Shown here piece by piece: positions 543 through 60,164 of a stretch of 64,000 nt of DNA. The position numbers and the translations under genes are program-made. This DNA comes from Epithemia pelagica (lineage: Eukaryota; Protista; Bacillariophyta). The notes under the pieces are model-generated. The model worked only from the letters and a program-made list of their open reading frames with translations, did no database searches and was not told the origin of the DNA. The stretch's first letter is position 1. The number at the start of each line of letters is the position of its first letter. The DNA lies in the NCBI GenBank assembly GCA_946965045.2, contig OX337232.1:1-64000 (forward strand), in the 5' to 3' direction.

Positions 543-814
543 AAAAGAACGGGGGAACAACTAAGAGTGCGGTAATGGTTAGTAATGAATGAAATTAAGG
601 ACTCATATTAAATATGAGTGCTTAGAAATTAGACTTGAGCGGGGCATAGACATTCTGTGCTCATCTGCACAACGAGCAGTGCTCTTTTGCAATAAAAGGC
701 ATATATATCAGTGCTCATATGCACAGATACTATAGCCCCTTGTGCTCATATGCACACGTTCAAATCCTACGGTCTCTAGTACTAAAGACACCCAAAAAAG
801 GCAAATATCCTTAG
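543..814 (-). mobile_element. Segment 1: A-type element terminus, capped directly by telomere
   Basis: Near-identical to 4022-4292, 6769-7040 and 8338-8607; ends aaatatccTTAG at 814. Confidence 0.85.
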
Positions 815-2835
815 TGTAGGGTCCAATAACTATGACCCGACTGCTCTGTGACCATCAAAGTTGTATGCTGGTTATGTATTGCTGTCTCATCCACCTGGGG
901 AAAAAGTACATTGGACACAGATGTCCAAAAATGCCTGATTTGTGTACAGTCCGGGCGATCCTCAAACCCAAAGATGGTTGCCACAGCATCACCCATGTAG
1001 AATGCCTGATTATTTCTCACAGGAACAAGGCAACCAAGAGATTCATGGCGAAGTTCACATAGCACTCGAAAGACCATGTATGCTCGACTCAAGGTCATGC
1101 AAAGTTTGTGCTCAATCAAATTTTTACCTTTGTGGTGAACACTGAACGCTTTTTCACTGTGTGAGTAGTAATACACACAGCCTCCATGCCACCGCACGTC
1201 AGAAAACAGGCTACGAGAAATTTCAGTGTATCGCATGGACCCCAAACCTGTTCCATGAAATGCCAATTCCAAATAGGAGGCAAGGACATCAATGTCGCAG
1301 AGATCATAGTCGTCCTGAAGAACAATATCCTCTTGGGAGTAATTATTGTGACCCGATGCCAAAGTCATTGTTGTCTTGCCCATAGAACTCCAACACACGA
1401 ACAGTGGATATCGTCGATTCAGTAGATTCACCCAACGATTACCCTTGATCACCTTGCAAAGTGAAGCAACCAACTTGTCAAAGATGATCGGAATGACGTT
1501 CGACCATTTTTGAAACTTGAACATAAAACCATCAACAAGTATATCGTAGTTGTCTTGAATGGACACTTTCCGTGAAGACGGTGTGAGCGACTCTCTCTCC
1601 CGCATATGCCGAATCATACTTGCCAAAAAATTGACTGTGATGGAGTTTTGAACATTTTCCACCAGCCGAGAAGCTTTCTCATGGTAGCCCCGTCCCATGA
1701 AGTATATCATTGAGCAAATACTGGCCCGAAGCATGGCCAAAATGGCTGACAGCATTGTCGCAATGTAGGAGGGACTCCAAACAGAAAGTGTCTCTGAACC
1801 TTCTTGCCCCCGGACAACTCTCCCCGCGCAGTAGGTCATGACTGTGGTATGATGCTGAACAGAATCCACTGTTTCTAAACACAGCTTTGCCAGTAAAGAG
1901 GGAATATCTCTAGTGAGTGGCAGAAGTTTGTGGTTGCTTTGACACAGGAACGAGAGCAATTTCTTGAACTCGGGGAGAAGTCTTTTGGAGTATGCAGTGA
2001 AGGTGAAAGTAGAAATCGCATTGGGACTTCTTGCTCTATCAAAGACCAACAGCCTTGATCGGTAATTTGCTGGAACCATCTGGACATGGAGGGCAGCCTG
2101 TGCTGTGAGCCAGTTTTCTCCTTGATGGTACAACAAATCAAAGAGTGGTTGATTGTCGATGATGTGTTTCAAGTTGATGGAGTCATATAAGAAATGCACT
2201 CGTTCCTTGAATGACCTTCCCTTGGGCCTGGATGGGTAAGGTTCGTCTTGGGCCAAGGGATGGAAAAGGGGTACGAAACACCCCATCATATCGGGGAGTA
2301 CATGAAGAGTTGCTTGTAGTTGTGTGCTTGTTTTGAGTGAAGGGGCTTCTTGACAGGAATACTTGATCTGTAATGCCTTGAGGGAAATCATACGGCCACA
2401 GGTACTGATTTGTAGCTCCTCTTCTGTAGGGGAGGGAGCACCGCAGGTACGACCCGAGGACAAATGTCTGTACACATTTTGAAGTTTCAAGCTCCCAACA
2501 AGACAATGACATGAATAGCCCTTGACCTTTTCCCCCGTCATATATTCAGAGACACTTGAAATGTCTTGCATAACACTTTGAAGGAGGGTCATTTGATGTT
2601 CTATCAGTGACTGGCTTTCAGAACGTGAGACAGACACACCATGGCCATTAAGGTGCCTTTGCATGGACCATAGACTGGTTCCGAACGGTTTCCCACATAG
2701 GCGACACCCCATACCAAAGGGGGTCACTAGCGTGACATCGACAGCCTGTAGTTTGTTCTCTTCCTTTTTTTTCTTCGTTGGTCTCCTCCTTGATGGAGAA
2801 GGAGTCCCTGGCCCATTATTAGAGGGGGAAGCCAT
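811..2835 (-). CDS. Zn-finger + tyrosine-recombinase-like protein, family A' (674 aa), 3'-truncated; TLH-like N-terminal half
   Basis: N-terminal CRLC..HLNGH and CHC..RHL motifs. YR-like motifs HGTGLGSMRYTE (R), SHSEK (K), QIRHFWT (RH) and EQSGHS (GH). The stop codon is supplied by the junction at 811-814. Confidence 0.7.
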   Translation of the reverse strand: MASPSNNGPGTPSPSRRRPTKKKKEENKLQAVDVTLVTPFGMGCRLCGKPFGTSLWSMQRHLNGHGVSVSRSESQSLIEHQMTLLQSVMQDISSVSEYMTGEKVKGYSCHCLVGSLKLQNVYRHLSSGRTCGAPSPTEEELQISTCGRMISLKALQIKYSCQEAPSLKTSTQLQATLHVLPDMMGCFVPLFHPLAQDEPYPSRPKGRSFKERVHFLYDSINLKHIIDNQPLFDLLYHQGENWLTAQAALHVQMVPANYRSRLLVFDRARSPNAISTFTFTAYSKRLLPEFKKLLSFLCQSNHKLLPLTRDIPSLLAKLCLETVDSVQHHTTVMTYCAGRVVRGQEGSETLSVWSPSYIATMLSAILAMLRASICSMIYFMGRGYHEKASRLVENVQNSITVNFLASMIRHMRERESLTPSSRKVSIQDNYDILVDGFMFKFQKWSNVIPIIFDKLVASLCKVIKGNRWVNLLNRRYPLFVCWSSMGKTTMTLASGHNNYSQEDIVLQDDYDLCDIDVLASYLELAFHGTGLGSMRYTEISRSLFSDVRWHGGCVYYYSHSEKAFSVHHKGKNLIEHKLCMTLSRAYMVFRVLCELRHESLGCLVPVRNNQAFYMGDAVATIFGFEDRPDCTQIRHFWTSVSNVLFPQVDETAIHNQHTTLMVTEQSGHSYWTLH

Positions 2836-3057
2836 TGTCGATAGAGGTTTTGCTGAGAGTGTTCAAGAGACATCTTTCATCGTTCATCAAAGAAAGGGAG
2901 TGATGACCCTTTGCAGAATTGCATTGGGCCCAATTTACTGAACGAATGATGGGTAGGTACAAAGACCTAGAGGCATAAACTAGGAATGGTCAAAATGGGA
3001 TTTTGATGAGAACTAGTGATGGGTGGAATGAGATTTTTCTGTGAAATGCCAGCGTCA

Positions 3058-3069
3058 TTTGGCGGGAAA
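3058..3069. promoter_or_regulatory. E2F-type site TTTGGCGGGAAA in the family A' leader
   Basis: Canonical TTTSSCGS double site about 220 bp upstream of the ATG at 2835. Confidence 0.5.
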
Positions 3070-3217
3070 AAAGATTGTACAAAAAAGTTAGTTGGTCATT
3101 TGTGTACAAATATATGTCACTCGTACACACATATTAGCTGGTTTGTTGTAACAAGGAAATTTTGTACAGCAAACCAAAGGAAATTCAATCTTACGTTGAT
3201 TCTTCTATGTAGAGTAG

Positions 3218-3751
3218 GGCAAGACAAAAACCTAACTGGCAGAGCTCTGAAAAGTATTTGGCCAGTTTAGAGCATATTGAATATGACGGCTTTTCGGGAG
3301 TGGTCAAAGGGGCATAGACAAGGCCACTGCTCAATCGCAACAAAAGCATAACAAATTGCAGCTCATCCGCAACAAATCCTTGCTCATATGCAACAGGCAC
3401 TATAGGATTTTGTGCTCATATGCACACGTTCAAATTCTACGGTCTCTAGTACTAAAAGCTCCCAAAAAAGTGAAATATCCTTAGGGCAAGACAAAAACCT
3501 AACTGGCAGAGCTCTGAAAAGTATTTGGCCAGTATAAAGCATATTGAATATGACGGCTTTTGGGGAGTGGTCAAAGGGGCATAGACAAGGCCACTGCTCA
3601 ATCGCAACAAAAGCATAACAAATTGCAGCTCATCCGCAACAAATCCTTGCTCATATGCAACAGGCACTTTAGGATTTTGTGCTCATATGCACACGTTCAA
3701 ATTCTACGATCTCTAGTACTTAAAGCTCCCAAAAAAGTGAAATATCCTTAG
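3218..3751 (-). repeat. Two tandem A'-type termini (3218-3484 and 3485-3751, about 267 bp each)
   Basis: Both run ggcaagacaaaaacctaactggc ... gaaatatccTTAG. Confidence 0.9.
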
Positions 3752-4292
3752 AGTTGGATTTCCTTGTAGCCTATCGAAGTACAATGGTAAACTATCAGAT
3801 GTTCATGAATCTGGCCGGTGCATGGAACAGAGGAAGAGACATAACCAGCCGACTCTCAAGCAAAAGCAAGGATGGGCCTCTTTGCAAGAGTCATAATTCA
3901 TGAAACAACAATGACCTTTTGTTGGGCCAAGTGAGGTTTTCAGGTGAAGATGTTGGGCCAATTGAGGTTTTCAGGTGAAGATGTTTGGCGCGAAGGGGCA
4001 CGCAGGCGAGCTTTTCGCGCCAAAGAATGGGGGAACAACTAAGAGTGCGGTAATGGTTAGTAATGAATGAAATTAAAGACTCATACTGAATATGAGTGCT
4101 TAGAAATTGGACTTGAGCGGGGCATAGACATTCTGTGCTCATCTGCACAAGGGGCAGTGCTCTTTTGCAACAAAAGGCATATATATCAGTGCTCATATGC
4201 ACAGATACTATAGCCTCTTGTGCTCATATGCACACGTTCAAATCCTACGGTGTCTAGTACTAAAGACACCCAAAAAAGGCAAATATCCTTAG
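3752..4292 (-). mobile_element. Segment 4: A-type terminus plus leader, no substantial CDS
   Basis: From about 3820 it matches 8135-8607; ends aaatatccTTAG|gg at 4292. Confidence 0.8.
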
Positions 4293-6621: not shown

Positions 6622-7040
6622 GGCCTTTTTGCAAGAGTCATAATTCATGAAACAACAATGACCTTTTGTTGGGCCAATTGAGGTTTTCAGGTGAAGATGT
6701 TGGGCCTATTGAGGTTTTCAGGTGAAGATGTTTGGCGCGAAGGGACACGCAGGCAAGCTTTTCGCGCCAAAAGAACGGGGGAACAACTAAGAGTGCGGTA
6801 ATGGTTAGTAATGAATGAAATTAAGGACTCATATTGAATATGAGTGCTTAGAAATTAGACTTGAGCGGGGCATAGACATTCTGTGCTCATCTGCACAAGG
6901 GGCAGTGCTCTTTTGCAACAAAAGGCATATATATCAGTGCTCATATGCACAGATACTATAGCCCCTTGTGCTCATATGCACACGTTCAAATCCTACCGTC
7001 TCTAGTACTAAAGACACCGAAAAAAGGCAAATATCCTTAG
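6622..7040 (-). mobile_element. Segment 8: A-type terminus only (419 bp)
   Basis: Matches 8191-8607; ends aaatatccTTAG|gg. Confidence 0.85.
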
Positions 7041-8118: not shown

Positions 8119-8299
8119 TGCTGGTTTCCTTGTGTGCATGGAACAGAGGAAGAGACATAACCAGCCGACTCTCAAGCAAAAGCAAGGATGGGCCTCTTTG
8201 CAAGAGTCATAATTCATGAAACAACAATGACCTTTTGTTGGGCCAATTGAGGTTTTCAGGTGAAGATGTTGGGCCTATTGAGGTTTTCAGGTGAAGATG

Positions 8300-8340
8300 T
8301 TTGGCGCGAAGGGGCGCGCAGGCGAGCTTTTCGCGCCAAA
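8300..8340. promoter_or_regulatory. Inverted pair of E2F-type sites (TTTGGCGCGAA ... TTTCGCGCCAAA) in the family A leader; also 3984-4024 and 6731-6771
   Basis: TTTCGCGCCAAA is the classical DHFR-promoter E2F element; the 11-bp arms form a perfect inverted repeat. Confidence 0.5.
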
Positions 8341-8603
8341 GAATGGGGGAACAACTAAGAGTGCGGTAATGGTTAGTAATGAATGAAATTAAGGACTCAT
8401 ATTGAATATGAGTGCTTAGAAATTAGACTTGAGCGGGGCATAGACATTCTGTGCTCATCTGCACAAGGGGCAGTGCTCTTTTGCAACAAAAGGCATATAT
8501 ATCAGTGCTCATATGCACAGATACTATAGCCCTTGTGCTCATATGCACACGTTCAAATCCTACGGTGTCTAGTACTAAAGACACCCAAAAAAGGCAAATA
8601 TCC

Positions 8604-9095
8604 TTAGGGTAACCTGCTGCAGGGCAGCGGCATGGTAAATGTTGAATTCTCAACTTGAATTATTGGGGTCCAGTTGGTTTCTTGCTGCATGGTTTCTCTT
8701 TGGGGCCTTGGCATGAAGCATCCACACTTCAGCTTGTGGAAGGTCTTCGGAATCACTTCAGCATTGTTGCAACAACCAGCAGTGTGCTTCTCGCACAAAA
8801 GCTTCTTGTGAAACATCTTGTCACAGTGACCACAGAAATACTTGATATCTGTTTCCTTGGACTCGTGTATGAAACAATCAAACGGTTGGTTGTTGGCATT
8901 CTCCACCAAGTCGTGTATCTTTTTTCCAAGATGTCTTCCAGGGAACCGAAATGACACTGCATGAACCTCAGAGCAAGTCTTGGCGTGACGAGCAAGGCAC
9001 TTCATGTTTGCTCGGAAACCAACACCACAGAGTTTACAGACCAAGCCACAGGGTGTGGCAAAGTCCACAAGCCCCAAGTAATCGTCAAACTCCAT
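8604..9095 (-). pseudogene. Divergent Zn-finger gene, family D, truncated at 8608
   Basis: ATPCGLVCKLCGVGF..LARH and YFCGHCDKMFHKKLLCEKH parallel the two Zn motifs of families A and B; stop created by the TTAG junction. Confidence 0.7.
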
Positions 9096-12418: not shown

Positions 12419-12941
12419 GGTCAGGAATGAAGACAATGATGCGGAAAAGGCTGAATCCTATCTGGCAAGGCTTACAAGAGAATGCATTGTGTGCAAGGAG
12501 GCAGGATGCAATGGTGAAAGCTGTCTGCCCTATGGAGCATGCTTCAACTGTGGTCAGCCAGGTCACCAGAGAGGACAGTGCCGAGTCGATTTCCAAACAG
12601 TCTTGAGCAACAAGGCCTGCTTTTACTGCTTTGATGTGTTCAGCAGGCGCGGCTACAAGCAACACAATCCCAGTGCATGTCCTTTACAACGAAGATTGAA
12701 GCGGCTGATGATCGATGTATATGAGTCAAGGAAGACCAATGGACAATCCAGAGCAATGACTGATTTCATGTCCAAAGTAACATGCGACAGCCATTCGTTT
12801 CATGATTTTCTGTGTCAGAGTGTTGAACAACGGATGGGCATGACAGTGACACAGACACCTCATGCAACCACAGCAGCCAGACCGTCTGTGGCACGACCAG
12901 CTCTACCAAGGAATCCATATGCAAAGAAAGCATTCAAGTAG
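12419..12941 (+). pseudogene. 5'-truncated C-terminal fragment with Cys/His zinc-knuckle motifs; probable tail of the element's large protein
   Basis: The frame is open back to the junction: RVRNEDNDAEKAESYLARLTRECIVCKEAGCNGESCLPYGACFNCGQPGHQRGQC..CFYCFD..H..C. It contains a perfect CX2CX4HX4C. Confidence 0.65.
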
Positions 12942-13429: not shown

Positions 13430-15260
13430 CTATGGTTCAGGCACTTCGAGCTCCAATCCGACGTAGTAGTTTTGGGCCAACCAGGGCAGTGCAGTGGGTC
13501 GCCATTCATAGACCGCCATGCCCAATCCATTGGCCGTAAAGCAGCCCTTGAAGGCCTGGTTCCAAAAGGTGAATTGGGGACGACCCGTTCCAGTCGTTGT
13601 TGCGGTGGTGCGTTTGGGTTGGTACTGTCCCTCTTGGATCACGGCTTGATACAAGGCTTGTCGCGCCGCCGGAATGCCTTCATCTTGGGGCCCCGTGCCA
13701 CCAAAGGTAACCACCGCCACTCGTCGGGGGCCCACCCATGTATACCGACACTCGGGTTCCATGCTTGTCGTCGTCGTCGTGGTACTCGACGATGACGGTT
13801 CCTCGGCTGTCGTGTCTGGTTCGTCCTCATCCTCAACGTGGTTGCTGGTGGCGGGAGACCACACGAGTTGCGATTGAAGTTCGACCGAAAGAGGAATCTG
13901 CCATTGCAACAACACACCATTCGTCGCGTTGTTGTTGTTGTTGCTACTGCGAATTTGGAGTTCGAGCGGCGAGGTGGGGACAAATCGTTCTTGGGTCGGT
14001 CCCACAGTCGATAGGGCCGACACGCCAAAGGCATGACTCGGCAAGACTTGGGCCAATTGCACGGTCCGATCCATGCTGGTATCGACCTCTGTCGGTGTCA
14101 CATACCATCGTCCGGGCCAGTCCCTAATTTCATAGCCACGTCGTTTTTGCACCACAACGTGAGGTTGCACTTCGGCCGACGGTGTCATGCCAATGTGATA
14201 CAAATCCCAAAAGCGCGGCACTAATTGACTGGCGAGGTAGTGATTGCGCAACAGGGACACTTGATCGTTCTTGTTGTTGGTGGTGTCATGTCCACCAAAC
14301 AAGAAATCGTCTTGTTGCACAATACTCCATGATGACGAATCGAGTTGTCGTTCCAATTGCAAGTGGGAGGATCCGACCAAGAGGACCCGAGGTTCCCAGG
14401 CGAATTCGGACCAGGCCACGGACAGTTCTCAATGCAGTTCCATTGAGAGACTGTGCCTCGACAGCAAGAAAACCCAGACGGCAACCGGCACCTTGAATCC
14501 ATTGGAGGCTTTACAATATGCCTTGTACGGCTTTGAACGCGTCGATGTCGCAACTACAGTGGGTCGCCCACTACCCAACGACACGTATAACAATAATAAC
14601 CAACCTTTGTCAGTGGGTGTCTTCCACACCAACTTGGTGGCATAGCCCTTCAACTCCACCCCTTCCTTGTTGTCCGCCGCAGTCCTTTCCATCTCTAATT
14701 CGGCGTCATCATACAAGACCTGATTGATGCCTCAAAACGATCCCATGCGCCATAGGACGACGACTCGCTCGTTTTGCCGTCCGCTCATAGGACTTCCATG
14801 GCTCCGGCTTTGGCGTCGTTAACTTCTTCCTTTTCTTTCTCGCCCCCAAGAAATTCGGCTCCTCAAATGGCCGGTGTGGTCGTCGTCGAGCTTGCGGAAG
14901 TGGTAGTGCGGTCGACCGAACGGCGCGATTGACGACGCTTTGTTGGAATAGTGGGCGTGGATTCCACCGACGACGATGATGACGACGACAGAGTCAAGAC
15001 AAAGCGAGCACGTGTTGGTGGGACGGCAAGACAAACAGAAACGACAGATTGGGGATGATGGCTGTCGTTGATGTGGTGGCTGTGGTGGTCGCAAGGAGGA
15101 CCCTGGAACCCGCATGATGGAAGCATCGTCCGATCGTCGAGCCCCAGCGGTACCTCCTTGCTGAAAGGCCCCTACCACACCGGTGCCTTGGTTCCATTCG
15201 ACGACAACGACGACAACGACGACGACGACAAGCAGCCACAGCATCCGAACCGCCTTCATA
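13430..15260 (-). pseudogene. Decayed gene: signal-peptide-like start, possible SnoaL/DUF2358-like region, SOUL heme-binding-like C-terminus
   Basis: C-terminal WVGPRRVAVVTFGG..ARQALYQAV; hydrophobic N-terminus MKAVRMLWLLVVV..VGAF; in-frame TGA at 14429-14431 and further stops or frameshifts upstream. Confidence 0.45.
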
Positions 15261-15793
15261 TCGTTGGCCCGTTTCCGTCCCACCAAATCCTTGCGTGACA
15301 ATCCACGACCTCGTGGACGCCTTGTCTCGCTCACCAACACATTTAAATTGTGCATCGTTGTCCATGAGTGTTCGGAGCACCTCCACGTGGAAGTGATGAG
15401 ACCGGGTGCGGCTATACTGCAGCTATGCTCTTCTTTTGTGTCGAGAAAAACTTGAATCCCCCAATAGATGCTCGGAAACGGGATTCGATTCAGCCGGAAG
15501 GGTGGACTACCTAATACTCCTAATAGAGAAATATCCCATCCCATTAGATAGTCTCAATGGTGTTTCGAACTGCACAAGACTCTATGTCTCTCTCTTTATA
15601 TATAAATAGAGAGAGAGAGAGACAGAGGATGACAATGAAACACTGGATTAATGGAACGACTGTCCACCCGGTTACGCCAGTCTACAGACTAGGTTCTTCC
15701 CCTCGCTTTTCAATGTTCTGTGGTGGCGGTGGTTGAATAGTTCCCAAAGGATCTGTTTCAGGTAACGAAATACATGCCTCCGCTCCACCATCA

Positions 15794-18139
15794 TCAAATC
15801 TGTAGAGCCTCAAAGAGATTGTCAACTCGATCCTGATTGTGTGACGACTTTCGCAAAAGGTTCTTCGGCGAGTCTTCACATGCCACAAAGGCATGCGAAG
15901 AATAGATCTCGGTCTGCTCCAAACTATGACCCAGGTTTTGAACTGCGTTAGAGACACCAAAGTCATCCTGCTCGGGGACGCAAACCAAACGAAAGACATC
16001 CGTATCCGGAAATGGCTTCAAACTCATAGAATTCAGGTTTTCATCCGAAATAGTGGGAGGGTCTAAGCAGCCCAGCAAAATAATGATACACACTGCGGTG
16101 GGTTCCGCTTCATCCTTTCGAAGGCCTTTCAGAAACTCCGTCATCGTGGCCGACCAAAGATCAACATCTGATTTCGAAACGTTGGCCCAATTCTTGACGG
16201 TCACCAGCAGAGGGTGAAACGTGCACCGTACCGGGGAGACCTGTTTTACCCTGATCGATGCCGCAATATCAAAGGCCTTGCAATTCTTGTAGGCATAGCT
16301 GGCAAGACCTGCGAGATAAAGGCGGCTCAAATATGTTTGCTTGCAAAAAGACTTTCCTCGAAAATCATTTCGGCAAACTTGGATAAAAGATATCGTGTTT
16401 GAGGTTTCTCCAGTTCTTTCTTGGGTGGTAAGGATGGCAGCGTCAGAGTCCACCGCTAGATATTCAGTATGGGCATTTCCCTCCGCATCTTCCGGGCTGG
16501 AGTCGGTTGGTTTTCTGCCGCCGCTTTTCAAGAGTCGAAACCATTCGTCCAACGAAACAGAAAAGATTGAGAGTCCTGAGTCAGTCTCTTTTCGCAGCAC
16601 ATCACCGCAGAAAAGCATGTACAACGCGGCAAAAATTTCGACCGCGTCCCCCTTATCGGGTAGACACAATTTGGTGGTGAATGCCTTCTCCGCCTGACGA
16701 GTCCAAAATTGCTTTCCGTAGCCCTGGAGCTCTCCGTCCTGCCACGTTTCGTCCATCAACCGCATGGCCAGGGTCGCGCACAGCGGATCCGGCATAAATG
16801 TCACTTGCGCCAGAGGAGTAGAGGCATTGTTCTCCTGTTGTCGAAAGCTAACCAAACAGGCGTATCCAGAGCTCACCAGCTCGGTCAATGTGTGAAAGGA
16901 GTTGACGATTCCCATCTGCACTCGTGTACCCAAAACGCTGTAGCAGGCAGAAAGATCCTTTTCATAGTTTGCGCATGACAACACCAAACGCTTGGCAAAT
17001 TCTGTCAGCTTTTTCGGATCCAGCGTATTTGTGATATAGTAGTAGGCAAACAACGGTCTTCCGTAGATCACCGCCTCTGGAAATTGTGACTCTGTGGATA
17101 CTACTGCGCTCGTGCTGCGCAGAGTCTCTTGCTCCATCCCTCGCAAGCAAGACATTGTATTCAGCTCAAAAAAGGGCGGATACAACATTTTCTTGTCGCC
17201 TTCACCGGCTTTATAATTCACATATGTGATCGTCGCTGATCGTGAAACACTTCGCCGAGGGGGATCGGGTGGGAAAAAGTTGGAGAGCTCAACTGTCGTT
17301 CCAGCAAAGACGGCAACCACTTGGGCCTTGCGCTTTTTTCGCAGCCACCATCGAATGGCTCGAAACACTAGAGAACCCTTTCCTTCCGCATCAACTCCTT
17401 CCATCAGACCTTGTGCTTCATCGAAAAGAAGTACCACTTTGCCACTCAATCCACGAATAATGCTGTCCATTCTTTCAAAGACGGTCTCCACGATAGTGTC
17501 GGTGGTTTGGACGAGTTGGTGGTCAAAAAACTTGTGTCTAGTTTCCGAGCTGAGATGTACGTCCAGACAGAGGATCGTTTGACAGTGTTGTCCTTCCTGT
17601 TGGTTGTAATGGTCGCGAAACTCGTGAAACAATTTGGTTTTTCCCATTCCACTTGATTGAACAAGTGCAAAGTAGGGCGCCCGAAATTTCATAGAAATCG
17701 CCGAGTTTGTATGCCACAAAAAGAGATTTTCGATGCGTTCCCCAAAGGCTTTCAAGTCGAGGGCGTGCACAAGCTTTGTATCCAAACCATCTACAATGCT
17801 GGGACCTCGATGATTGGATTTGGCCTCTTGAAGTTCCGGGAACAAGATTTTCAAGGCCTCTTTCGCATGATCCTCCGTAAAAGCTGGATAATCCAGAAAA
17901 AGAGCTCCTAGGATATAGTTGACACGACTGTTGTGTTCCTGTTTTTCTGAGAAACGGTTGGTTGACGTGACTTTTTTCAACTTCTGGACAATACTGATGT
18001 CGAAACCATTCTGCTCCACGAATGCTTTCCATTGTGACGACAGTTCGGATCCTTCTTCGTCCATCTCCATGTCGCTTGCATTCATCCTCGTCGAATTGGC
18101 TTTTACTTGCAAGCGAGGCTTTTTCGTTGGACCGCTCAT
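15794..18139 (-). CDS. P-loop NTPase + restriction-endonuclease-like protein (Crinkler/CR-NTPase-REase-type), 781 aa
   Basis: Walker A variant APYFALVQSSGMGKT, Walker B LLFDEAQ, YGRPLF motif, and C-terminal AFDIAASI..LLVTVKN resembling a PD-(D/E)xK motif. Confidence 0.7.
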   Translation of the reverse strand: MSGPTKKPRLQVKANSTRMNASDMEMDEEGSELSSQWKAFVEQNGFDISIVQKLKKVTSTNRFSEKQEHNSRVNYILGALFLDYPAFTEDHAKEALKILFPELQEAKSNHRGPSIVDGLDTKLVHALDLKAFGERIENLFLWHTNSAISMKFRAPYFALVQSSGMGKTKLFHEFRDHYNQQEGQHCQTILCLDVHLSSETRHKFFDHQLVQTTDTIVETVFERMDSIIRGLSGKVVLLFDEAQGLMEGVDAEGKGSLVFRAIRWWLRKKRKAQVVAVFAGTTVELSNFFPPDPPRRSVSRSATITYVNYKAGEGDKKMLYPPFFELNTMSCLRGMEQETLRSTSAVVSTESQFPEAVIYGRPLFAYYYITNTLDPKKLTEFAKRLVLSCANYEKDLSACYSVLGTRVQMGIVNSFHTLTELVSSGYACLVSFRQQENNASTPLAQVTFMPDPLCATLAMRLMDETWQDGELQGYGKQFWTRQAEKAFTTKLCLPDKGDAVEIFAALYMLFCGDVLRKETDSGLSIFSVSLDEWFRLLKSGGRKPTDSSPEDAEGNAHTEYLAVDSDAAILTTQERTGETSNTISFIQVCRNDFRGKSFCKQTYLSRLYLAGLASYAYKNCKAFDIAASIRVKQVSPVRCTFHPLLVTVKNWANVSKSDVDLWSATMTEFLKGLRKDEAEPTAVCIIILLGCLDPPTISDENLNSMSLKPFPDTDVFRLVCVPEQDDFGVSNAVQNLGHSLEQTEIYSSHAFVACEDSPKNLLRKSSHNQDRVDNLFEALQI

Positions 18140-30850: not shown

Positions 30851-31751
30851 AATCAACCCAAAGATCATCACGGGACAACACAATGGGTTGGTCCACATCC
30901 TTTCTGTGTCTCAACGCCATGCTCTCTATGACAGTCCTTACTCAGAATGTCCACCTCGCAGCAGCAGCAGCAGCACCAACCAGCGGAATGGAAAATGGTG
31001 CATTGCACCATACACATGAATATCGCTACCTTCTACAACGGGTCGATCTACACTCAAACGTGTCGTCGTTGGCATCGACGGGATCTCTCCCACAGCCATT
31101 CGTACCAGCCGTTTAGGAATCCTTGGACGACAGTCACCCTCCACAAAGAATACTACTGCAACAGCTGCTTTGGGTATCCGAGGCAGCCGACCATTACAAT
31201 TCTTCACCGACAAGGACGACGACCCGCGTCTTTAGATGATTCACCACCATGAGTCATCGTTGTGACCACCAAAAAGACCCACTGCACAACGACAACGACG
31301 GCAACAACCACCATTGGTAGATCCGGAGCGAAACATTCCCACTCGAGCACCACATTCATGCACCACACCATGGCGAAGAACTAGACTCGCAGATTCTTCC
31401 CTCTCGTAGTTGCGCACCTTTACAAGTGGAGAAAAGTCTGTCGTCTATCCTTGGACTTTCTGGAGTGGACCACAATGGAACCAGGAATTCCGTTTCGTGG
31501 CGGTCCATACCACGTCCATACACGTTACGGGTCGAGAGAACCGAGTTTCGCACCTCCTCTTTGCTGGTTCGCGTACGCTCCAACCAGTCCACGGTTGTTG
31601 AATTTCTCACGAGCGTGGAAGGATCCTGCACGACGCCAGTCAATTTGCTATTTGTGAGTCGTTTTGGATGGAGGACGGACCGGGTGAGTCGAGAACAATA
31701 ACAGCCTCCACTCAAAAGACCCATCTTACTTTGGGAACGAGAGCAATCACA

Positions 31752-32873
31752 ATGGAAATCCAAAAGCAAGCGTTCTTGTCTGGATTGGTCTTTGCCAGCG
31801 ACAAAGACCAAAAGATACCGCAATGGAGGCTAACTGGATGGTCTCCATGTTTGGGAGACCGTCGGTTTACCCATGGGACGGTTGTTGTACGTCGTCAAGG
31901 CGAGGAGATTGTGGTACTGTTGGGAGGATGTGCCATACCAAGTTGCGTCCCATTGAATTCAGGTGTTTGTTTCAATGTTCAAAGCAAGAAGTGGCAAGAA
32001 GGGCCATGTATGCATGAAAAACGAGCATGTCCTGCGTCGGTACTATGCAACAACGCTATTTACGTCATTGGTGGATACAACTGTACCAACGGCTTCAATT
32101 CATTGGATACAATTGAACGTATCCAAGTCGAGGACTTGATGCATTCGTCGTCAGCTTCCATCAAGGACACGAGAAAATGGCAGAAGCTGCAATGTCGTTT
32201 GTCTACGCCACGCTACGACTGCGCCGCAGCTGTTGTGCATGATAGATTCATTGTGGTGGCAGGAGGACGGTGTTTTTTCGGACTGGAAGGACGAAATCGC
32301 CCTTCCCGACTGACCGAAATATCCTCGGTTGAAATACTTGACACAGCAGCATCCGGAAATCCATGCACCGTCATATCTGGACCCTCCTTACATCACACTC
32401 GTTGTGAGTTTGGAATGGCTGTGGTTGGTCAACGCATTTATGTTGTGGGTGGGAGATCGTTGAGCTCCGTGGAATATCTGGACTTTGATGACATGTTGGA
32501 CGATTCACCAAATTGTGCATCATCTGTGTTTTCTTCGAGCAAGTCGTGGACGATCCACAAAAACCTCCATCTGAACATATCTGAAGAGGTTCATGCTGTC
32601 GTTCAAGTGGGCTCCTGTCTCGTTGTTGCAGGAGGTTGGAAAAACCGGTCCAAGCGCTCGGTTAAAGTCTTGGATACCGTAAACAATATTGTTTGGGAGC
32701 TTCCGAAGACGATCGGGTACAGTTGGGGTTGTAGCACGGTTACCTTGTCGAGTGGGATTGTTGCCATGAATGGCTGTGATTCGAGAGACGCATTTGAAAC
32801 GCTGTCACTTGTGGACAAGACCAGTTGGCTTTTTGCTCATTTGTTGTCCATTGGGAAAGTCCCAACCATCTAA
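31752..32873 (+). CDS. Kelch-repeat protein K2
   Basis: Intact frame from MEIQKQAF to IGKVPTI; repeated GG-containing kelch motifs; no BTB domain. Confidence 0.85.
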   Translation: MEIQKQAFLSGLVFASDKDQKIPQWRLTGWSPCLGDRRFTHGTVVVRRQGEEIVVLLGGCAIPSCVPLNSGVCFNVQSKKWQEGPCMHEKRACPASVLCNNAIYVIGGYNCTNGFNSLDTIERIQVEDLMHSSSASIKDTRKWQKLQCRLSTPRYDCAAAVVHDRFIVVAGGRCFFGLEGRNRPSRLTEISSVEILDTAASGNPCTVISGPSLHHTRCEFGMAVVGQRIYVVGGRSLSSVEYLDFDDMLDDSPNCASSVFSSSKSWTIHKNLHLNISEEVHAVVQVGSCLVVAGGWKNRSKRSVKVLDTVNNIVWELPKTIGYSWGCSTVTLSSGIVAMNGCDSRDAFETLSLVDKTSWLFAHLLSIGKVPTI

Positions 32874-35265
32874 CCATGCAAGCAGAGCGATAGTCATGGA
32901 GGCACCGGGATTGCGATTTTCTCGGGTCACTACTTTTCCAATCCATATGATTGATCGCTTCATCTCTTGGGTAGAACGCAAGGAGAATTAACTTGTGTCC
33001 TTTTTGGTATATACATTTGGTTTTTTTCTTTGTATTCCATTCATGACGATCTTCCTTGTCACACGGGAAAGAACCAGCCTAGTATGCCTCTACTAGGCAG
33101 GCCGGCATGCCTTGGGGGGCGACAAGTACTAGTATTCCTGGGTAGTACTATACTTACTGCGACAACGAAAAAGTCTCGGAGCAATGTTGCAATTTCTCGT
33201 TTCCAATCACAACCAAAAGTACACTTTCAAGCACAATCTTCCTTCAAGAGATCTGCTGCAAGAGATCTGCTGCAGTGGTCTGTACGTGGGTCCCTGTGTT
33301 CTGTGTGGGTGAGTGTTGAGAGTCAGACGACGGATGCGTTTCATGGAGCTGTGGAAGGAGTCGCTGTGGGATATCGTCGACTTTCTTTCTGCAGGTTTTC
33401 CTGATAAATTCAGTAAATAATCAGTATACAAAGGATTTTGGACGGAAAAAGGAAAAAAGCCATTTCAAATTTGAAATCGGAATCAAGTTTGCCCCAAAGA
33501 TCCATCACGACAACAGATAACAGAAACAATGGGATGGTCCACACAAATCTTGCATCCTTTCTCTTTCTCAACGCCATGGTCTCTATGACAGTCCATACTC
33601 AGAATGTCCACCTCGCAGCGAAGAAGAACCAACCAGTGGAATGGAAAATGGTGCTTTCGGTACGACCTTCCTCGTCACCCCCGTCTGGTACGTGTGTGTC
33701 AGTGTGTCGAGTGGTGGCGGTGGTGGTTGTTTTGCCCGGAGAGAAGAAACCGTATTCCTCTCACTCTCTATTTTCTGGCGTGTATCTATTAGAATTGGAA
33801 GTTTTGAAGCGTTCTCATTGTCAGCGAATCCGGGCCGCCACGACACTCAATGGAGCTCAGTGCTCAGTTGCTCCTTCCCCTCACCTTTCCTTCGCCACAT
33901 AAACCAACACCAAGAACTGATGTTGTTTGGCTCTTGTACTGTGGTCTTTTGTTCTTGCAAAGCTCCTGGAGCACCCAAAGAAGACCAACCGTTGCCACTG
34001 GGGCACTCGATTTACCTTTTTGCCTTGGAGTTGGTGTCGCCCGTTGGGCCTCGCTCACTCGGAACTATTGGAAGGTACGATGGATGCATCCAGCCAAGCG
34101 GTCCTCGTTTTGCCAAGTATTGCGCCATGTTGGTATCGCTTCCTTCCACGGGTCGATCCACACTCAAACGTCTCCGAGTTGGCATCGACGGGTTCTGTCT
34201 TGCCCCACCGTGTCTGTCGTCTTGACGCACAAGGAAAGGTATCAAGCGCTTCTAGGCCACTGTCCCTCAATAGCCGTCCCTTTGGCCACATCCTTCTGCC
34301 TTGCCTCCACCCCTTGGCCCGAGCCGAGTTGGCACCCAATCCCTGGCCTCCCCGACAAGAACCACTACCACCAGCAAAATAAGGAGGATTACCGAGTCTT
34401 GCTGTCAAGGAATCGTGCAGCAGCAGCAGCAGCAGCAGTCGGTGCTGGTACAGTCACCGCCACAACACCCATGTGTCTCTGTGTCATTGTCTCCTGTTTG
34501 GCCAGGAGTGCGCCAATGACGACCTACAGAAGGAGAAGGAGCCTCTCCACAACCATCAGCACCAGTCTTTTCGTACTAGGAGGAATCCTTTTCACCACCT
34601 CCCATCGAAGGACTCTTGCCAATCCTTTGACGACTGTCACCTCCACAAAGAATCCTATGGTACTGCAACAGCTGCTATGGGTATCAGAGGCAGCCGACCA
34701 TTACAATTCTTCACCGACAAGGACGACCCGAGTCGTTGGATGATTCACCACCATGATTTATCGTTGCGACCACCACAAAGACCCACTGCACAACGACGAC
34801 GACGACGAAAACAACCACCACCAGTGGTAGATCCGGAACGAAACATTCCCACTCGAGTACCACATTCATGCACCACACAATGGCAAAGAACTAGACTCAC
34901 AGATTCTCCCCTCTCGTAGTTGCGCACCTTTCCGGGGGGGGGGGGGGGGGGAGTGCAGTCTATAGTGGTGCAGAGTGACAAAGACACCACATTCAGACCA
35001 GGAATTCCGCTCCGTGGCGGTCCATACCATGTTCATGCACGTTACGGATCGAGCGAACCGAGTTTCGCACCTCTTCTTTGCTGGTTCGCGCACACTCCAA
35101 CCAGTCTGTCGTCCACGGTTGTTGCCTTTCTCACAAGCGTGGAAGGATCCTTCGGCAAGTCAACTAGCTATTTGAGCGTCGATGAAAGAGGGATACGCAT
35201 GGATCGGTTCTGGTGAGTCAAGAACCACAACAGCCTCCACTCAAAAGACCCATCTTGCAGTCACA

Positions 35266-36348
35266 ATGAATATCCATAAGCAAGCGTTCTTGTCTGGATT
35301 GGTCTTTGTCATGAGCAAAGACCATAGGGAACCGCAATGGAGGCCGTCCCTTTGGCCTTCATATTTGGGAGCATGTCGGTTTTCCCATGTGTCGGTTTTT
35401 TTACGTCGTCAAGGCGAGGAGATTTTGGTCGTGATGGGAGGATGTGCCCAAAAGACTCGCTTCCGATTGAACTCGGTTGTTCACACTGCTTATTTGAACG
35501 TTCAAAGCAAGAAGTGGCAAAAAGGGCCCTGTATGCATGAAAAACGATCATGTCCTGCCTCGGTAATATGCAATAACTCTATTTACGTCATTGGTGGATT
35601 CAACGGCTTCCATACATTGGATACCATTGAACGTATCCATGTCGACGACCTGCTGCATTCTTCGTCAGCTTCCAGCAACTGCATGAATGGTTGGAATGTA
35701 TTAGATTGTCGTTTGTCTACGCCACGATGGCAGTGCGCCGCAGCTGTTGTGTATGATAGATTTATTGTGGTGGCAGGAGGACGGTGTTTTTTCGGACTGG
35801 ACAAGTTTTCATCCGTTGAAATTATTGATACAGCATCGGGGAATGCATGTTCTATCATTCCTGGACCATGCTTACAGGTCGCTCGTTGTTGTTTTGGAAT
35901 GGCTGTGGTTGGTCATCGCATTTATGTTGTGGGTGGGATGCTTTCGAGCTCCGTGGAATATCTGGACTTTGATGAATTACTGGACGACTCACCGAATTGT
36001 GCAGCATCTGTGTTTTCATTGAGCAAATCGTGGACGATCCACAACAGACTTTGCCTGAACAGGCTTGGGACGATTAATGCTTTAGTGCAAGTGGGATCCT
36101 GTCTCGTTGTAGCAGGAGGTTGCAAAGCTGGGTCCAAACTTGCGATGGAAGTTTTAGATACCGTGAACTGTATTGTTTGGGAGCTGCCAAGCAGCATTAT
36201 CAAACCCAGTTGTGTTTGTTGCATGGTTGCCTTGTCGAGTGGTATTGTTGCCATGAAAGACGACTCATTTGAAACCCTTTCAATTGTGGACAAGAACAGT
36301 TGGCTGTTTGCTCGTTTGGTGTTCATTGGGAAAGTTTCGATCAAATAA
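35266..36348 (+). CDS. Kelch-repeat protein K3
   Basis: Intact frame from MNIHKQAF to IGKVSIK; kelch motifs. Confidence 0.85.
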   Translation: MNIHKQAFLSGLVFVMSKDHREPQWRPSLWPSYLGACRFSHVSVFLRRQGEEILVVMGGCAQKTRFRLNSVVHTAYLNVQSKKWQKGPCMHEKRSCPASVICNNSIYVIGGFNGFHTLDTIERIHVDDLLHSSSASSNCMNGWNVLDCRLSTPRWQCAAAVVYDRFIVVAGGRCFFGLDKFSSVEIIDTASGNACSIIPGPCLQVARCCFGMAVVGHRIYVVGGMLSSSVEYLDFDELLDDSPNCAASVFSLSKSWTIHNRLCLNRLGTINALVQVGSCLVVAGGCKAGSKLAMEVLDTVNCIVWELPSSIIKPSCVCCMVALSSGIVAMKDDSFETLSIVDKNSWLFARLVFIGKVSIK

Positions 36349-37277
36349 CCCTACACACAAAACGGTATTCATGGAGGGACCAGGATTCTCATTGCTCGGC
36401 TCACTACTATTCCAATCCATTTGACGATCCGTTCCATAACGAATTCCTCCACCACTGCTCGGATGGATCGCTACATCTCTTGGCTAAAAAGAAAACAAGA
36501 AAGAAGAATTAACTTTTGCGGAGCCTATTTGTATATCCATGCAGTTTTTCTTCTTTTTCTAGAATATCAGCATATCCACATCATTGCCACCAGAGTTCAT
36601 CTTTCATTATGGATGTCACCAAGAACCCAATCCACGATGATTACACGAGCGAGTGTTGTTCCATCTTTCTTGCGACATGGAGAAGGCCAGTGCTACGGGG
36701 ACACGAACTAGTAGTAGTCCTTTAGTACTACTCCTACAATACGAAGTGGAAGGGTGTTCCACCGTGTGTGCCGGATTTAATCGAACCCCGAAATTTCATG
36801 GTGGTGGTCCATTCCTCCTTCGTTGGCCCAAACATACAACGAATCGAGAGATTCGCACCTCTCTGGTTGGCTCGTTCACGACCGTGGGAGGATCCTTCAC
36901 GATGCGAGTCAACGAGCTATTGGAGAAAGGAGATAGATCGGTCCTGGTGGTTCGAGAACCACATCATCAGCCTCCAGTTATTAGAGAGTCCATCATACTG
37001 TGGGAATGGGAGCACACTACACTCAGGACAGAGATTTACGGATCGAGAGAACCGAGTTTCGCACCTCCTCTTTGCTGGTTCGCGTACGCTCCAACCAGTC
37101 CACGGTTGTTGAATTTCTTACGAGCGTGGAAGGATCCTGCACGACGCCAGTCAATTTGCTATTTGTGAGTCGTTTTGGATGGAGGACGGAAACGGATGCA
37201 TCGGACCGGGTGAATCGAGAACAATAACAGCCCCCACTCAAAAGACCCATCTTACTTTGGAAACGAGAGCAATCACA

Positions 37278-38377
37278 ATGGAAATCCAAAAGCAAGCGTT
37301 CTTTTGTCTGGATTGGTCTTTGCCAGCTACAAAGACCAAAAGATACCGCAATGGAGGCTAAATGGATGGCCTCCATGTTTGGGAGAATGTCGGTTTACCC
37401 ATGGGACGGTTGTTGTGCGTCATCAAGGCGAGGAGATTGTGGTACTGTTGGGAGGATGTGCCATACCAAGTTGCGTCCCATTGAATTCAGGTGTTTGTTT
37501 CAATGTTCAAAGCAAGAAGTGGCAAGAAGGGCCATGTATGCATGAAAAACGAGCATGTCCTGCGTCGGTACTATGCAATGACGCTATTTACGTCATTGGT
37601 GGATACAACTATACCAACGGCTTCAATTCATTGGATACAATTGAACGTATCCAAGTCGACGACTTGGTGCATTCGTCGTCAGCTTCCATCAAGGACACGA
37701 GTAAATGGCAGAAACTGCAATGTCGTTTGTCTACGCCACGCTACGACTGCGCCGCAGCTGTTGTGCATGATAGATTCATTGTGGTGGCGGGAGGACGAAA
37801 TCGCCCTTCCCGACTGACCGAACTATCCTCGGTTGAAATACTTGACACAGCAGCATCAGGAAATCCATGCACCGTCATATCTGGACCCTCCTTACATCAC
37901 ACTCGTTGTGAGTTTGGAATGGCTGTGGTTGGTCAACGCATTTATGTTGTGGGTGGGAGATCGTTGAGCTCCGTGGAATATCTGGACTTTGATGACATGT
38001 TGGAAAATTCACGGAATTGTGCATCATCTGTGTTTTCTTCGAGCAAATCGTGGACGATCCACAAAAAACTCCATCTGAACATATCTGGAGAGGTTCATGC
38101 TGTCGTTCAAGTGGGCTCCTGTCTCGTTGTTGCAGGACGTTGGAAACACCGGTCCAAGCGCTCGGTTAAAGTCTTGGATACCGTAAACAATATTGTTTGG
38201 GAGCTTCCCAAGATGATCCGGTACAGTTGGGGTTGTAGCACGGTTACCTTGTCGAGTGGGATTGTTGCCATGAATGGCTGTGATTCGAGAGACGCATTTG
38301 AAACGCTGTCACTTGTGGACAAGAACAGTTGGCAGTTTGCTCGTTTGTTGTCCATTGGGAAAGTTCCCACCATATAA
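37278..38377 (+). pseudogene. Kelch-repeat protein K4; recent duplicate of K2 with a 2-nt insertion near 37303
   Basis: gcgttcttttgtctgg versus gcgttcttgtctgg in K2 shifts the frame after about 8 codons; the rest is near-identical to K2. Confidence 0.75.
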
Positions 38378-39964
38378 CCATACATGCATGAGAACGATTG
38401 CCATGGAGGCACCGGGATTGCGATTTTCTCGGGTCACGAATACTATTCCAATCCATGTAATGTGACGATACAATCCATAACGAGGTCGTCCACGATCGCT
38501 ATATCTCTTTGCCGGCATGAAAGGAGAATTAACTCTTGTTCTTGTTTGTATTTTCTTTTCTGGAATAGCTGCGCACTCATTTCATTACGATTCGCCTTGC
38601 CACACGGAAACTGACCACTACTAGGCAGGCCGGGATTCCTTTGCTGGGTACTACCTATAGTACCTATACTTAGTACGACACCAAAAAAGCCTCGAGCGAA
38701 GGAAGCATTGTCCAATGGTGTGGTGGTTGTGGTACCATGCCACCACAAACAGCTTCGGACCAAACAACAATAGTAGATCAGTCCCATGTGTGTTGTTCTT
38801 GTTGTGGTTGTCGTTGGTGTTACAACGACGCCCAAGACAAGTCTGTCGTCCCGAATGAATCATTTTCACGGTTGGACCTGAGCGTAGCGTGGTGCTCGAG
38901 GATCCTACTGTCCGTGTCGGAACATGATGGGAACCTTGGATGGAGGAAGGGAGGGATGGGTTGCTAGTAGTGTGCGTGCTCCAAATATGTGTGGTGTGGT
39001 GGGTGGTACTCGTTTTCACCCACGGCACACGGCTGCTCGCGTTTGGATTGTCATTCTCTGGTTTCTTTCGTCCTCCACTACTACCCGCACCAAACTACCT
39101 TCCTGTTAGTTTCAACAATGGCAAGTATGGAGATGCTCCCCAAAGTTCTCCCCCAGGGACACCACAGCGTTGTGCAATTTTGTGAGACAGAATTTCTGTT
39201 TTTTGGTGAGAGCGTGGTGCTTTCGTTTCTGTCGACTCCGTCCCCCAAGTTCACGCCGGCACGACCGCGATCCAAAGTTTGGCGCGGTCACGGTGACCCC
39301 ACTATAATTTCCTACTTATTGAACGGTGTCGACTACTTATGAGCATTGATTGGAATACTTAGGATGGAGCATGAAATCTGTCTGCATGGCGAAATTAAAA
39401 AATCCCCCAAGTTTTAACTCCATCCACTGGCCGAACCCCAACACAAAATGTCCACAGAAGCAACGGACCAGTCAAGCTTGAGGGAAAGCGTGTTCCCTAC
39501 TTATTTGATTCAGTACTCGTACAATGGAACATAGAAGGAGCACGTTCAACGTTCAACCTGTCGTACCGGCCGGCGTGCCTTCGTTCCAAATCAAGCCCCC
39601 GAAATTCAAACACACAGTTCTGTCGTTCGAAATGAATGAGTGGCGTCCCCCAAAATGGCAACTCCATTCACTGGCCGAACCCCAAACCCCAGCATCAACG
39701 GACAATCCATCCGTCCGACTCGGTCATTGGTCCGTTGCGTTGTCCCGCCCTAATAAAATTGAATTATTGGCAACGGACAGGCAGTGTATTTATCCAAAAA
39801 ACAAAAACGAGCGTCGAGGTGGAGCTCTCGGGTGGAAGAGAAATCTCCATTTTTTGGGAGAGGCACAGCCCACCCAGTCCAAAGAAGCATCCAGTGAAGG
39901 CAACGAGTTGCATCCAATCCAATCCAATCCAATCCAACCAGATTAGAGTGTCTTTGTTCATCCA

Positions 39965-41905: not shown

Positions 41906-43152
41906 GACTTGGTTCCGCATGACAACACACACACACACACTGCTACACGGTTGTCATGGCTTGACTCTTTCTATGTTACACATGTTCTTTGGTTTTGCTC
42001 TTGTTTTTTAACCTGTCGTCATGGAACCGCCCATCAACATCGTTTCGTTTCCTCTGCGTGGTCACTACTGATTGACATTCATCCATGTGGACCATTCTCT
42101 GGAGGGAATAAGTACTATTGTAAGATTATATGAGCAACTATGGTTACATTGAATGCACGCCAAAACTACCTCTAGGAGTAGTTTCTCAACATAGCGCATG
42201 TTGTGGACTTACGCCACGAGACGTACGCACAACAGACTGAAGACGGATCGCATTCGCTGAAATCATATGACCGCTATGCGACTGAAGAGGATCCAGTCGC
42301 CTATACAGTATATTGAGGCGGCCGATAGCTACAATGATAGCTACTCCTCGCTAGGAGTACTCCTTACTTGTAGTGGATCTTGCGGATGAACAGCCTCCGT
42401 AGTATCACATTCCTCTAGAGACAATAGAAAAAGAGAGCATCCTTGTCTGTCGTCCTGTTCCATGGTTTTTTACAGCCGTGGATAGAAAGCAGGTACCATC
42501 ACCATCTCCCTTTCCCGCACAAGCACCCCCCAAAACAAGTATTCCCTCCATCCATCCAAGATTCATATGGTTCACAGACATTGGCAGTAGGATCCTCAAG
42601 CACGTGATAGACTTTTCTTTTGCGTCGTCGTAACAAGAACAAGGGAATGATCTCTTGGTGTTGGGTTAATGGACCCACTGTGCCAGCCGTCCGTCCGAGA
42701 CTTTTTCTTCGTAGGAGAACCTAGTACTACAGGACTACTAGCTAGGTAGTAGTTCTTGTCCCCAAAGCACTTACATGTTCCGTGTTGCAAGAAAGATGGA
42801 ACAACACTCGCTCGTACTATCATCGTGGATTGGGTTCATGGTGACATTCATCATGAAAGATAAACCGAACTTGCAAGTTCTACTTGGACCCGGCGGTATT
42901 GTGTTCTGGTGGTAGTATGATAGATATAAGCAGCTATTCTAGAAAAAGAAGAAGAAGATGAATGGATATACAAACAGGTTCGGCAAAAGTTAATTCTTCT
43001 TTCTTGCTTTTTTTTAGCCAAGAGATACAGCGATCCATCTGTACAGTCGTGGGCTTCGTTTTGAAACAGATCGTTACATGGATTGGAATAATAGTGAGCC
43101 GAGCAATAACAATCCCTATCCCTCCATGACTATCGTTCTGTGTGCATGGCGA

Positions 43153-59839: not shown

Positions 59840-60164
59840 GCTAGCATGTAAACTCTTTTGAATGGAGAGATTCATAAAGTTTAGAAATAAACTGGTACTC
59901 TGGGTCGTTGAGTAGCCCCGTGCTGTGTGGTTGTCATAGTAGTAGTTGCTCGTTGATAACAAATAGTGTCGTTGGCGTAGCGGATCGTCGTGCTTCGAGG
60001 AGAGAAAGTTTCCGTACGTCTTCTTTTGACCTGAACCAAAGAATATTACGTGGAGGTTCACGCCAGTCAGGTTTTTGCGTCAGCCCCCGCAACACGGATT
60101 TTCGAGAAAGTCGTTATCTCACACGCCTTGTCCTTTTCTTCCACAAAGCAAGAGACAACGTAGT

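Follow-up and report, generated by a model that had tools for sequence, protein, structure and literature searches.

The first 64,000 nucleotides (nt) of contig OX337232.1 of the diatom Epithemia pelagica (assembly GCA_946965045.2), the whole of which was analysed and is referred to here as the window, begin with a chromosome end. The last gene before that end, an open reading frame (ORF) of 674 amino acids (aa) at positions 811–2835 of the minus strand, is a 3'-truncated copy of a gene whose full-length relatives have the architecture described for telomere-linked helicases (TLHs). Structural models and residue conservation support the view that the middle domain of these TLH-type proteins adopts the fold shared by tyrosine recombinases (YRs) and type IB topoisomerases, with a complete R-K-R-H-Y active-site set. 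The window copy is without the nucleophilic Tyr expected at residue 677, the helicase and the C-terminal tail. It probably represents the non-helicase half of a TLH-type element gene, of which the first two-thirds from the 5' end are kept, and intact copies of this gene elsewhere would be active.

A 3'-truncated TLH-type gene is the last gene before the telomere

Positions 1–542 consist of 90 perfect CCTAAC units, and the window therefore represents a chromosome end. The 674-aa ORF is oriented towards the telomere and ends 269 nt from the (CCCTAA)n array; no other gene separates it from the chromosome end, so that it lies next to terminal telomere repeats as TLH genes do. A RecQ-type helicase, another mark of a TLH, is missing from this copy and present in its full-length relatives. 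The ORF is the longest among six related ORFs, variously truncated, that are stacked within the first 12 kb. Its frame is uninterrupted and its C-terminus reads ...EQSGHSYWTLH before the stop codon. The features of this copy and of the telomere are:

1–542, plus: terminal array of telomere repeats, (CCCTAA)n, 90.3 perfect CCTAAC copies; the G-rich strand, whose 5' to 3' direction leads to the chromosome end, is the minus strand
811–2835, minus: TLH-type gene copy (zinc finger, YR-fold, RecQ-helicase and CCHC gene), 3'-truncated, 674-aa ORF
2641–2724, minus: first zinc finger, C44-x2-C47-x13-H61-x3-H65; across 38 homologs there is no variation at C44 and H61 and hardly any at C47
2443–2520, minus: second zinc motif, C109-x-C111-x12-H124-x6-C131, a C2HC variant; C109, C111 and H124 are invariant
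814–1575, minus: predicted YR-fold catalytic domain, ORF residues ~421–674, from AlphaFold2 (AF2), VIA-align and invariant residues
1231–1233, 1150–1152, 934–936 and 832–834, minus: codons of the predicted catalytic residues R535, K562, R634 and H668, respectively; the Tyr-bearing helix is missing

A six-frame profile scan of the 64-kb window identified this ORF as the carrier of its sole recombinase-like domain and revealed neither a helicase domain nor a Tyr-bearing copy. Judging from its sequence, the window copy would be unable to form a covalent 3'-phosphotyrosyl DNA intermediate and is likely to be a catalytically incompetent relic. Its open frame probably reflects a recent origin, as it is 98% identical to an uncut copy of the gene (see below).

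Predicted active-site residues are invariant or nearly so in a divergent family

To describe the family, a profile of the non-helicase part was compared with 1.84 billion cluster representatives. At E ≤ 1e-3 there were 396 matching proteins, of which 114 reached E ≤ 1e-30, and many had a length of 1,300–1,600 aa; the cluster members are metagenome or assembly proteins. Family proteins are only ~25% identical overall. The ORF contains, in this order, the motifs GSMRYTE (R535), SHSEKAF (K562), QIRHFWTS (R634) and SGHS (H668), that is, the R, K, RH and GH succession in which the original prediction had recognized a tyrosine recombinase, and the four corresponding columns are invariant in 91/91 aligned homologous domains. 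The first Arg belongs to a conserved G.G..R..E context, the Lys follows ~27–30 residues on, the second Arg stands in R[H/Q]F[W]TS and the His in GHS. A Tyr is found at His+9 in 89/90 domain segments, about where uninterrupted homologs had been predicted to carry it. Thr(+4), His(+5), His(+25) and Gly(+29), numbered relative to the same His, are near-invariant besides, and the same catalytic residues are invariant in 38 full-length proteins. Conservation in 91/91 and 89/90 sequences is therefore not that of a chance motif match, and this reading was rejected on residue conservation together with the fold.

Full-length relatives of ~1,350 aa comprise two zinc fingers, a conserved helical region, the YR-fold domain, a RecQ-like helicase and a CCHC tail. 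As anticipated for intact homologs, DEAD and Helicase_C domains lie directly 3' of the middle domain (residues about 770–1,100), and the best non-family matches of this helicase are bacterial RecQ proteins. The C-terminus of the full-length metagenomic proteins consists of Cys-rich motifs that close in a consensus CCHC knuckle.

Furthermore, a word-indexed protein search recovered four relatives only, which come from a single assembly, either of this strain or of a sister strain; with a domain-plus-helicase profile, this type of search added bacterial RecQ and two Clonostachys helicases, which are without the domain. A scan of metagenomes for relatives yielded three short contigs, and tblastn against phage records gave no match. 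A run of three TTAGGG units was found in none of the loci of relatives checked (L006–L009 not among them). In L007, a 28-kb metagenome contig, a 1,523-aa full-length gene is followed up to the contig end by 389-nt tandem repeats (14719–16225) without telomere repeats. A gene pointing to the contig end with such repeats is no more than suggestive of a telomere linkage in relatives. Another full-length member, P0039 (1,607 aa, from a Logan contig), has a match to a Tet/JBP-like 2OG-Fe(II) oxygenase (PF20515, E 2.6e-4) C-terminal to its helicase.

The middle domain is predicted to adopt a tyrosine recombinase fold

Searching Pfam with the ORF, with 82 segments of the domain and with 38 segments of the N-terminus gave weak C2H2 matches only and no recombinase family. 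AF2, given an 82-sequence alignment, modelled window residues 340–674 with a predicted local distance difference test (pLDDT) score of 91.6 and a predicted template modelling (pTM) score of 0.85. The equivalent intact region of a relative was modelled with a pLDDT of 88.6. When both models were compared with the Protein Data Bank (PDB) by Foldseek, the top 20 matches were tyrosine recombinases, and the top 40 came almost entirely from the wider superfamily, with Cre, XerH, XerA, XerD, Flp, the HP1 and Staphylococcus aureus integrases, type IB topoisomerases and protelomerases among them.

These similarities were also seen with VIA-align. The intact model aligned with XerH (Z 9.2 over 148 residues, 3.4 Å), Cre (9.1), XerA (8.6), XerD (8.2) and variola topoisomerase (7.5). 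In an unbiased comparison of the window model with 48,161 PDB chains, only eight chains reached Z ≥ 8, all of them YRs or type IB topoisomerases: XerH (10.4, 211 residues), Cre (10.0, 208 residues), XerA (9.7), S. aureus integrase (9.7), an archaeal Xer (9.3), a bacterial type IB topoisomerase (8.9), variola topoisomerase (8.6) and IntI (8.4). The ninth chain was Leishmania topoisomerase I, with a re-aligned Z of 8.1, and in the unrelated lower rows only a helical hairpin of 65–70 residues was covered. Model residues 82–335 aligned to recombinase catalytic domains, and the XerH and Cre alignments start at model residues 10–13. In the models, strands 2 and 3 are linked by the hairpin that carries the Lys, and the second Arg lies inside a helix, close to its start, as in YRs. 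The expectation that residues ~520–674 would form a YR fold is thus borne out by the model scores and by the XerH and Cre alignments.

The gene is cut five codons upstream of the expected catalytic tyrosine

The stop is the seventh codon after His668, in agreement with the junction noted in the original prediction; among the intervening positions, four codons and one base are native, and the leader of the next element contributes the stop and, ahead of it, the two terminal codons (L, H). Contigs from X1, X2 and X3, three independent runs of the same organism taken from two samples of one study, differ from positions 819–1038 at 5 of 220 nt (98% identity) and diverge from the window beyond 819. 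Past that point, and joined in frame, they read GHSYWTHRDHYGSLSG; ...EQSGHSYWTHRDHYGSLSG. This uncut copy encodes GHSYWTHRDHY, which corresponds to the family consensus GHS..TH...Y and places the Tyr at His+9 (residue 677). The X2 contig extends 1,994 nt past the break, and the uncut copy is therefore present in the organism. Therefore, these contigs place the break between 819 and 818, five codons 5' of the Tyr, or, given the bases common to both partners, anywhere inside the CCC at 819–821; native protein is lost beyond Thr672. The features around the break are, a caret marking a joint:

819–821, minus: breakpoint, a CCC found both in the native gene, within ACC CAT (Thr672-His673), and in the incoming tip CCCTAAGG; located with the uncut copy
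543–818, minus: leader (5' tip) of a later element copy, first ~275 nt, ending ...TTCTTTTGG^GTTAGGG
2836–4292, minus: leader of the 811–2835 element copy, from the fixed tip CCCTAAGGATATTTGCC at 4292 to the ATG, recognized by sequence repeats

Further copies were found in L001 and L002, two contig ends of ENA ERZ21939226, an assembly of the same or a sister strain. L001 carries a 1,067-aa ORF and a frameshifted copy, the latter searched as separate pieces, and both have the Tyr and a DEAD-box helicase. The original prediction that even the longest copy would be dead thus holds inside the window and fails for the organism, in which copies with Tyr and helicase occur (L001, X1–X3).

Elements are stacked tip to stump at a fixed donor nucleotide

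The 543–818 sequence is repeated at 4019–4292, 6767–7040 and 8335–8608, where it runs for ~475 nt into the next ORF; it is therefore the leader, or 5' tip, of the next element. Every truncated ORF in the stack is followed by this same sequence on the sense strand, starting with CCCTAAGGATATTTGCC. At 818–543, the leader was joined to the truncated ORF; a later cut left ~275 nt of this leader, and TTAGGG repeats now cap it. The leader at 2836–4292 contains a tandem of two 267-nt units (3215–3751, 97% identical) that is absent from the leader at 8134–8608.

The same tip is found at four joints in the window and at three in L001 and L002, and the position of the donor nucleotide is fixed at all of them. 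In the minus-strand joints at 819, 4292, 7040 and 8607, a target CCC^A has been joined as CCC^TAAGGATATTTGCC. The native target was CCC^A at all four testable joints (ACCC^ATAG, TCCC^AACG, GCCC^ATCA and ACCC^AACG), for which the probability by chance at four independent positions is about 1e-7. The joint at 819 has five extra bases (TACAC) relative to the other three joints of the window. At one L001 joint (9511), only CC is common. The other stacked copies are cut at many different positions. Since the cut in the 811–2835 copy hit ACC-CAT, the codons of the conserved Thr-His, its location just 5' of the Tyr looks like a consequence of the target rule and not of selection.

We propose that the element tip is joined to chromosome ends by an active enzyme, the product of intact copies located at other ends. 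The intact protein would cleave the tip strand ...CCTTA(GGG) and form a 3'-phosphotyrosyl link, and the cleaved strand would then be joined to a strand with a 5' GGG at an eroded chromosome end. The 3-nt CCC/GGG match would correspond to the strand-swap homology check used by tyrosine recombinases. The helicase may unwind telomeric or subtelomeric DNA for tip-joining, and intact copies elsewhere could act in trans. The polarity fits this scheme because the strand with its 5' end at the chromosome terminus is the C-rich strand, that is, the acceptor.

Alternative explanations

Several points weigh against an active recombinase-like enzyme that builds these joints. Foldseek, with probabilities as high as 1.00, returned E-values of only ~1e-2, and VIA-align Z scores of 9–10 are above, not far above, the stated noise level of 7–8. 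Pfam Phage_integrase and DUF3435 had no match in 82 members even at E ≤ 10, and a PDB sequence profile search had none either. The R-K-R-H-Y set is predicted from sequence order and fold. Furthermore, microhomology-primed copying would leave the same 3-nt footprint, natural DNA ends normally carry a 5' phosphate and not a 5' OH, and both catalysis and the link between enzyme and joints are inferred. The short-read contigs listed do not bridge 814–819; the evidence for the 819 joint is therefore the assembly, together with the three parallel joints. A search of RNA runs revealed none with sequence of this copy. Finally, the 91 domains show no conservation of the His with which the classical HxxR box begins (Leu, Thr or another residue stands at position -3 of the second Arg), so that what they conserve is R-K-R-H-Y, the set of type IB topoisomerases.

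This last point leads to a different possible function. The domain could be a type IB topoisomerase-like swivel that relaxes RecQ supercoils at chromosome ends, with the genes being host telomere-maintenance genes and the stacks resulting from ordinary break-induced replication and from erosion of the ends. Type IB topoisomerases have R-K-R-H-Y as their pentad, likewise with no first His, the helicase fusion would suit a swivel, and the bacterial, variola and Leishmania enzymes score near the recombinases (Z 8.1–8.9). However, Xer and Cre score higher and over longer alignments (Z 10.4 and 10.0 over 211 and 208 residues), and homologous copying does not explain a fixed donor nucleotide joined to CCC^A in unrelated target positions. 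We therefore regard a swivel as improbable.

We consider it very unlikely that the domain is an exapted, non-catalytic DNA-binding module of YR fold, comparable to yeast Ndc10, with joints produced by host microhomology-mediated end joining or CCC/GGG priming. Ndc10 is among the fold matches (Z 5.4), and a 3-nt common core is also what microhomology repair would produce; however, such repair leaves the fixed donor end without explanation, and five canonical catalytic positions that stay invariant or nearly so at ~25% overall identity are hard to explain without catalysis. Least credible is that the truncated ORF is itself functional, whether as a DNA-binding regulator, as a dominant-negative or as a partner that receives a Tyr in trans as in Flp: its 674-codon frame is uninterrupted, the R-K-R-H part of the pocket is complete, Flp is among the top Foldseek matches of the intact model and Flp-type trans donation of Tyr is established, but at 98% identity to an uncut copy an open frame is expected from recency alone, the other stacked copies are cut at many positions, the cut lies at a CCC^A target and not at a domain border, and no RNA run contains the sequence.

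Other features of the window and related contigs

A second part of the element gene is found deeper in the stack, in inverted orientation:

12489–12941, plus: inverted fragment, C-terminal CCHC zinc-knuckle tail of the family (Pfam zf-CCHC), 150-aa ORF

The same 150-aa CCHC ORF lies 3' of a C-terminal helicase half in L002. L001 and L002 contain the same element stacks without a run of three TTAGGG units; this assembly seems to stop before the telomeres, or the ends differ between strains. In L002, a copia-type reverse-transcriptase-like fragment (…YVDDLAIIA…; 2757–3737, minus) stands beside the inverted helicase/CCHC piece. Just inside the stack of the window, a 781-aa ORF (15794–18139, minus) has weak AAA_22 and TniB-like ATPase similarity (E 2e-5 and 3e-3, below the Pfam cut-offs). 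Three paralogous Kelch-repeat ORFs and two BTB_2 ORFs occur in clusters in the deeper subtelomere (31668–44400 and 60075–63717).

Comparison with known systems

The present family shares with Cre, XerH, XerA, XerD and Flp the fold of the catalytic domain (Z 8–10.4). R, K, R, H and Y stand in the canonical order, and the Tyr follows the His at a distance of 9, as in XerD and Cre (W315-Y324). In contrast to these recombinases, the family is without sequence-profile similarity to them and without the first HxxR His, is fused to a helicase, and its joints are one-ended instead of two-site. The type IB topoisomerases (vaccinia/variola, bacterial and nuclear) have the same R-K-R-H-Y pentad and a comparable fold (Z 8.1–8.9); the first HxxR His is absent in them also, and vaccinia topoisomerase passes the CCCTT strand to which it is covalently linked on to any acceptor with a 5' OH, a reaction that resembles one-ended joining. 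Conversely, the N-terminal helical part of the family aligns better with recombinase core-binding regions.

Cryptons, the YR-encoding elements of the DUF3435 group, are likewise eukaryotic elements with a YR; here the pairing is between the tip CCCTAAGG and the target CCC^A. The present family differs from them in having no DUF3435 or GCR1_C match, in being joined by one element end, in forming chromosome-end stacks instead of occupying internal sites, and in its helicase. Crypton membership was rejected because no DUF3435 match was found in 82 members, only one end is fixed and the copies are always in chromosome-end stacks.

Yeast Y' and Drosophila HeT-A/TART are likewise repeated elements that build chromosome ends, and Y' also encodes a helicase; we know of no report of a recombinase-like domain in Y'. 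HeT-A and TART are retroelements with the opposite orientation and 5' truncation, whereas the diatom copies are in sense orientation towards the end, 3'-truncated and without reverse transcriptase. A retroelement of the Penelope/Athena or HeT-A type was rejected on these grounds, orientation and truncated end being opposite and reverse transcriptase missing.

The closest parallel is with the TLHs. TLH genes have been known in fungi since the late 1990s and were later found in a choanoflagellate, Monosiga; their proteins have two N-terminal C2H2 motifs (Cx2-3Cx8-14Hx3-5H and Cx2-5Cx11-16Hx4-5H), a conserved 'TLH domain' of ~250 residues, to which no function is assigned, immediately N-terminal to the helicase, and RecQ motifs, and the role of this domain and the spread of the genes among chromosome ends are unexplained (bioRxiv 10.1101/2024.02.27.582403). 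In Fusarium, subtelomeric genes specify proteins of 1,317 aa that combine DEAD, Helicase_C and DUF3505 (bioRxiv 10.1101/2023.02.05.527183). The diatom gene shares the last-gene-before-telomere position with the TLHs of Schizosaccharomyces pombe (Tlh1/2), Magnaporthe (TLH1), Ustilago (UTASa), Metarhizium, Fusarium and Monosiga, and the proteins, compared by description, have the same order of two C2H2-type zinc motifs, a ~250-aa domain and a RecQ-like helicase. The first zinc motif (Cx2Cx13Hx3H) fits the published pattern, whereas the second (CxCx12Hx6C) is of the C2HC type with another spacing. The present family also differs in occurring in a non-fungal eukaryote, in its CCHC tail and in the stacking of its copies tip to stump at the fixed CCCTAAGG tip.

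Pfam OrsD/DUF3505 matched 2 of 38 members weakly (E 0.057). In a feature search of the ESM Atlas with a full-length relative, Ascomycota OrsD(DUF3505) clusters came first (0.90 and 0.88), with OrsD+DEAD at 0.82 and DUF3435 at 0.77–0.79; a fold search with the domain model returned an Ascomycota DEAD/Helicase_C cluster (template modelling score 0.64 over 310 residues) and also bacterial Phage_integrase clusters. Taken as leads, these similarities and the architecture agree with a TLH/DUF3505 relationship. The link to fungal TLH and DUF3505 proteins made in the original prediction thus gains from the published architecture, the Fusarium genes and the Atlas leads, and stays indirect, the proteins being likened by description and fold only.

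Searches of the accessible literature, broader ones included, found nothing that joins 'telomere-linked helicase' and 'tyrosine recombinase', and the YR/type IB topoisomerase identity that our models suggest for the TLH-type middle domain was not found there. The puzzle of the 'TLH domain' is thus met by a family of the same architecture with a predicted YR fold and an R-K-R-H-Y set across at least 91 divergent proteins. It is tempting to speculate that the 'TLH domain' of fungi, choanoflagellates and the diatom lineage is an active YR/type IB topoisomerase-like transesterase, and that TLH genes are self-propagating DNA elements spreading by one-ended transfer of the fixed tip to a CCC/GGG at eroded ends with the help of their own RecQ helicase, a generalization that we put forward tentatively. 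With an 8-nt site defined, the question is now accessible at the bench. If the speculation is true, chromosome ends would be rebuilt by YR mobile elements of a new class.

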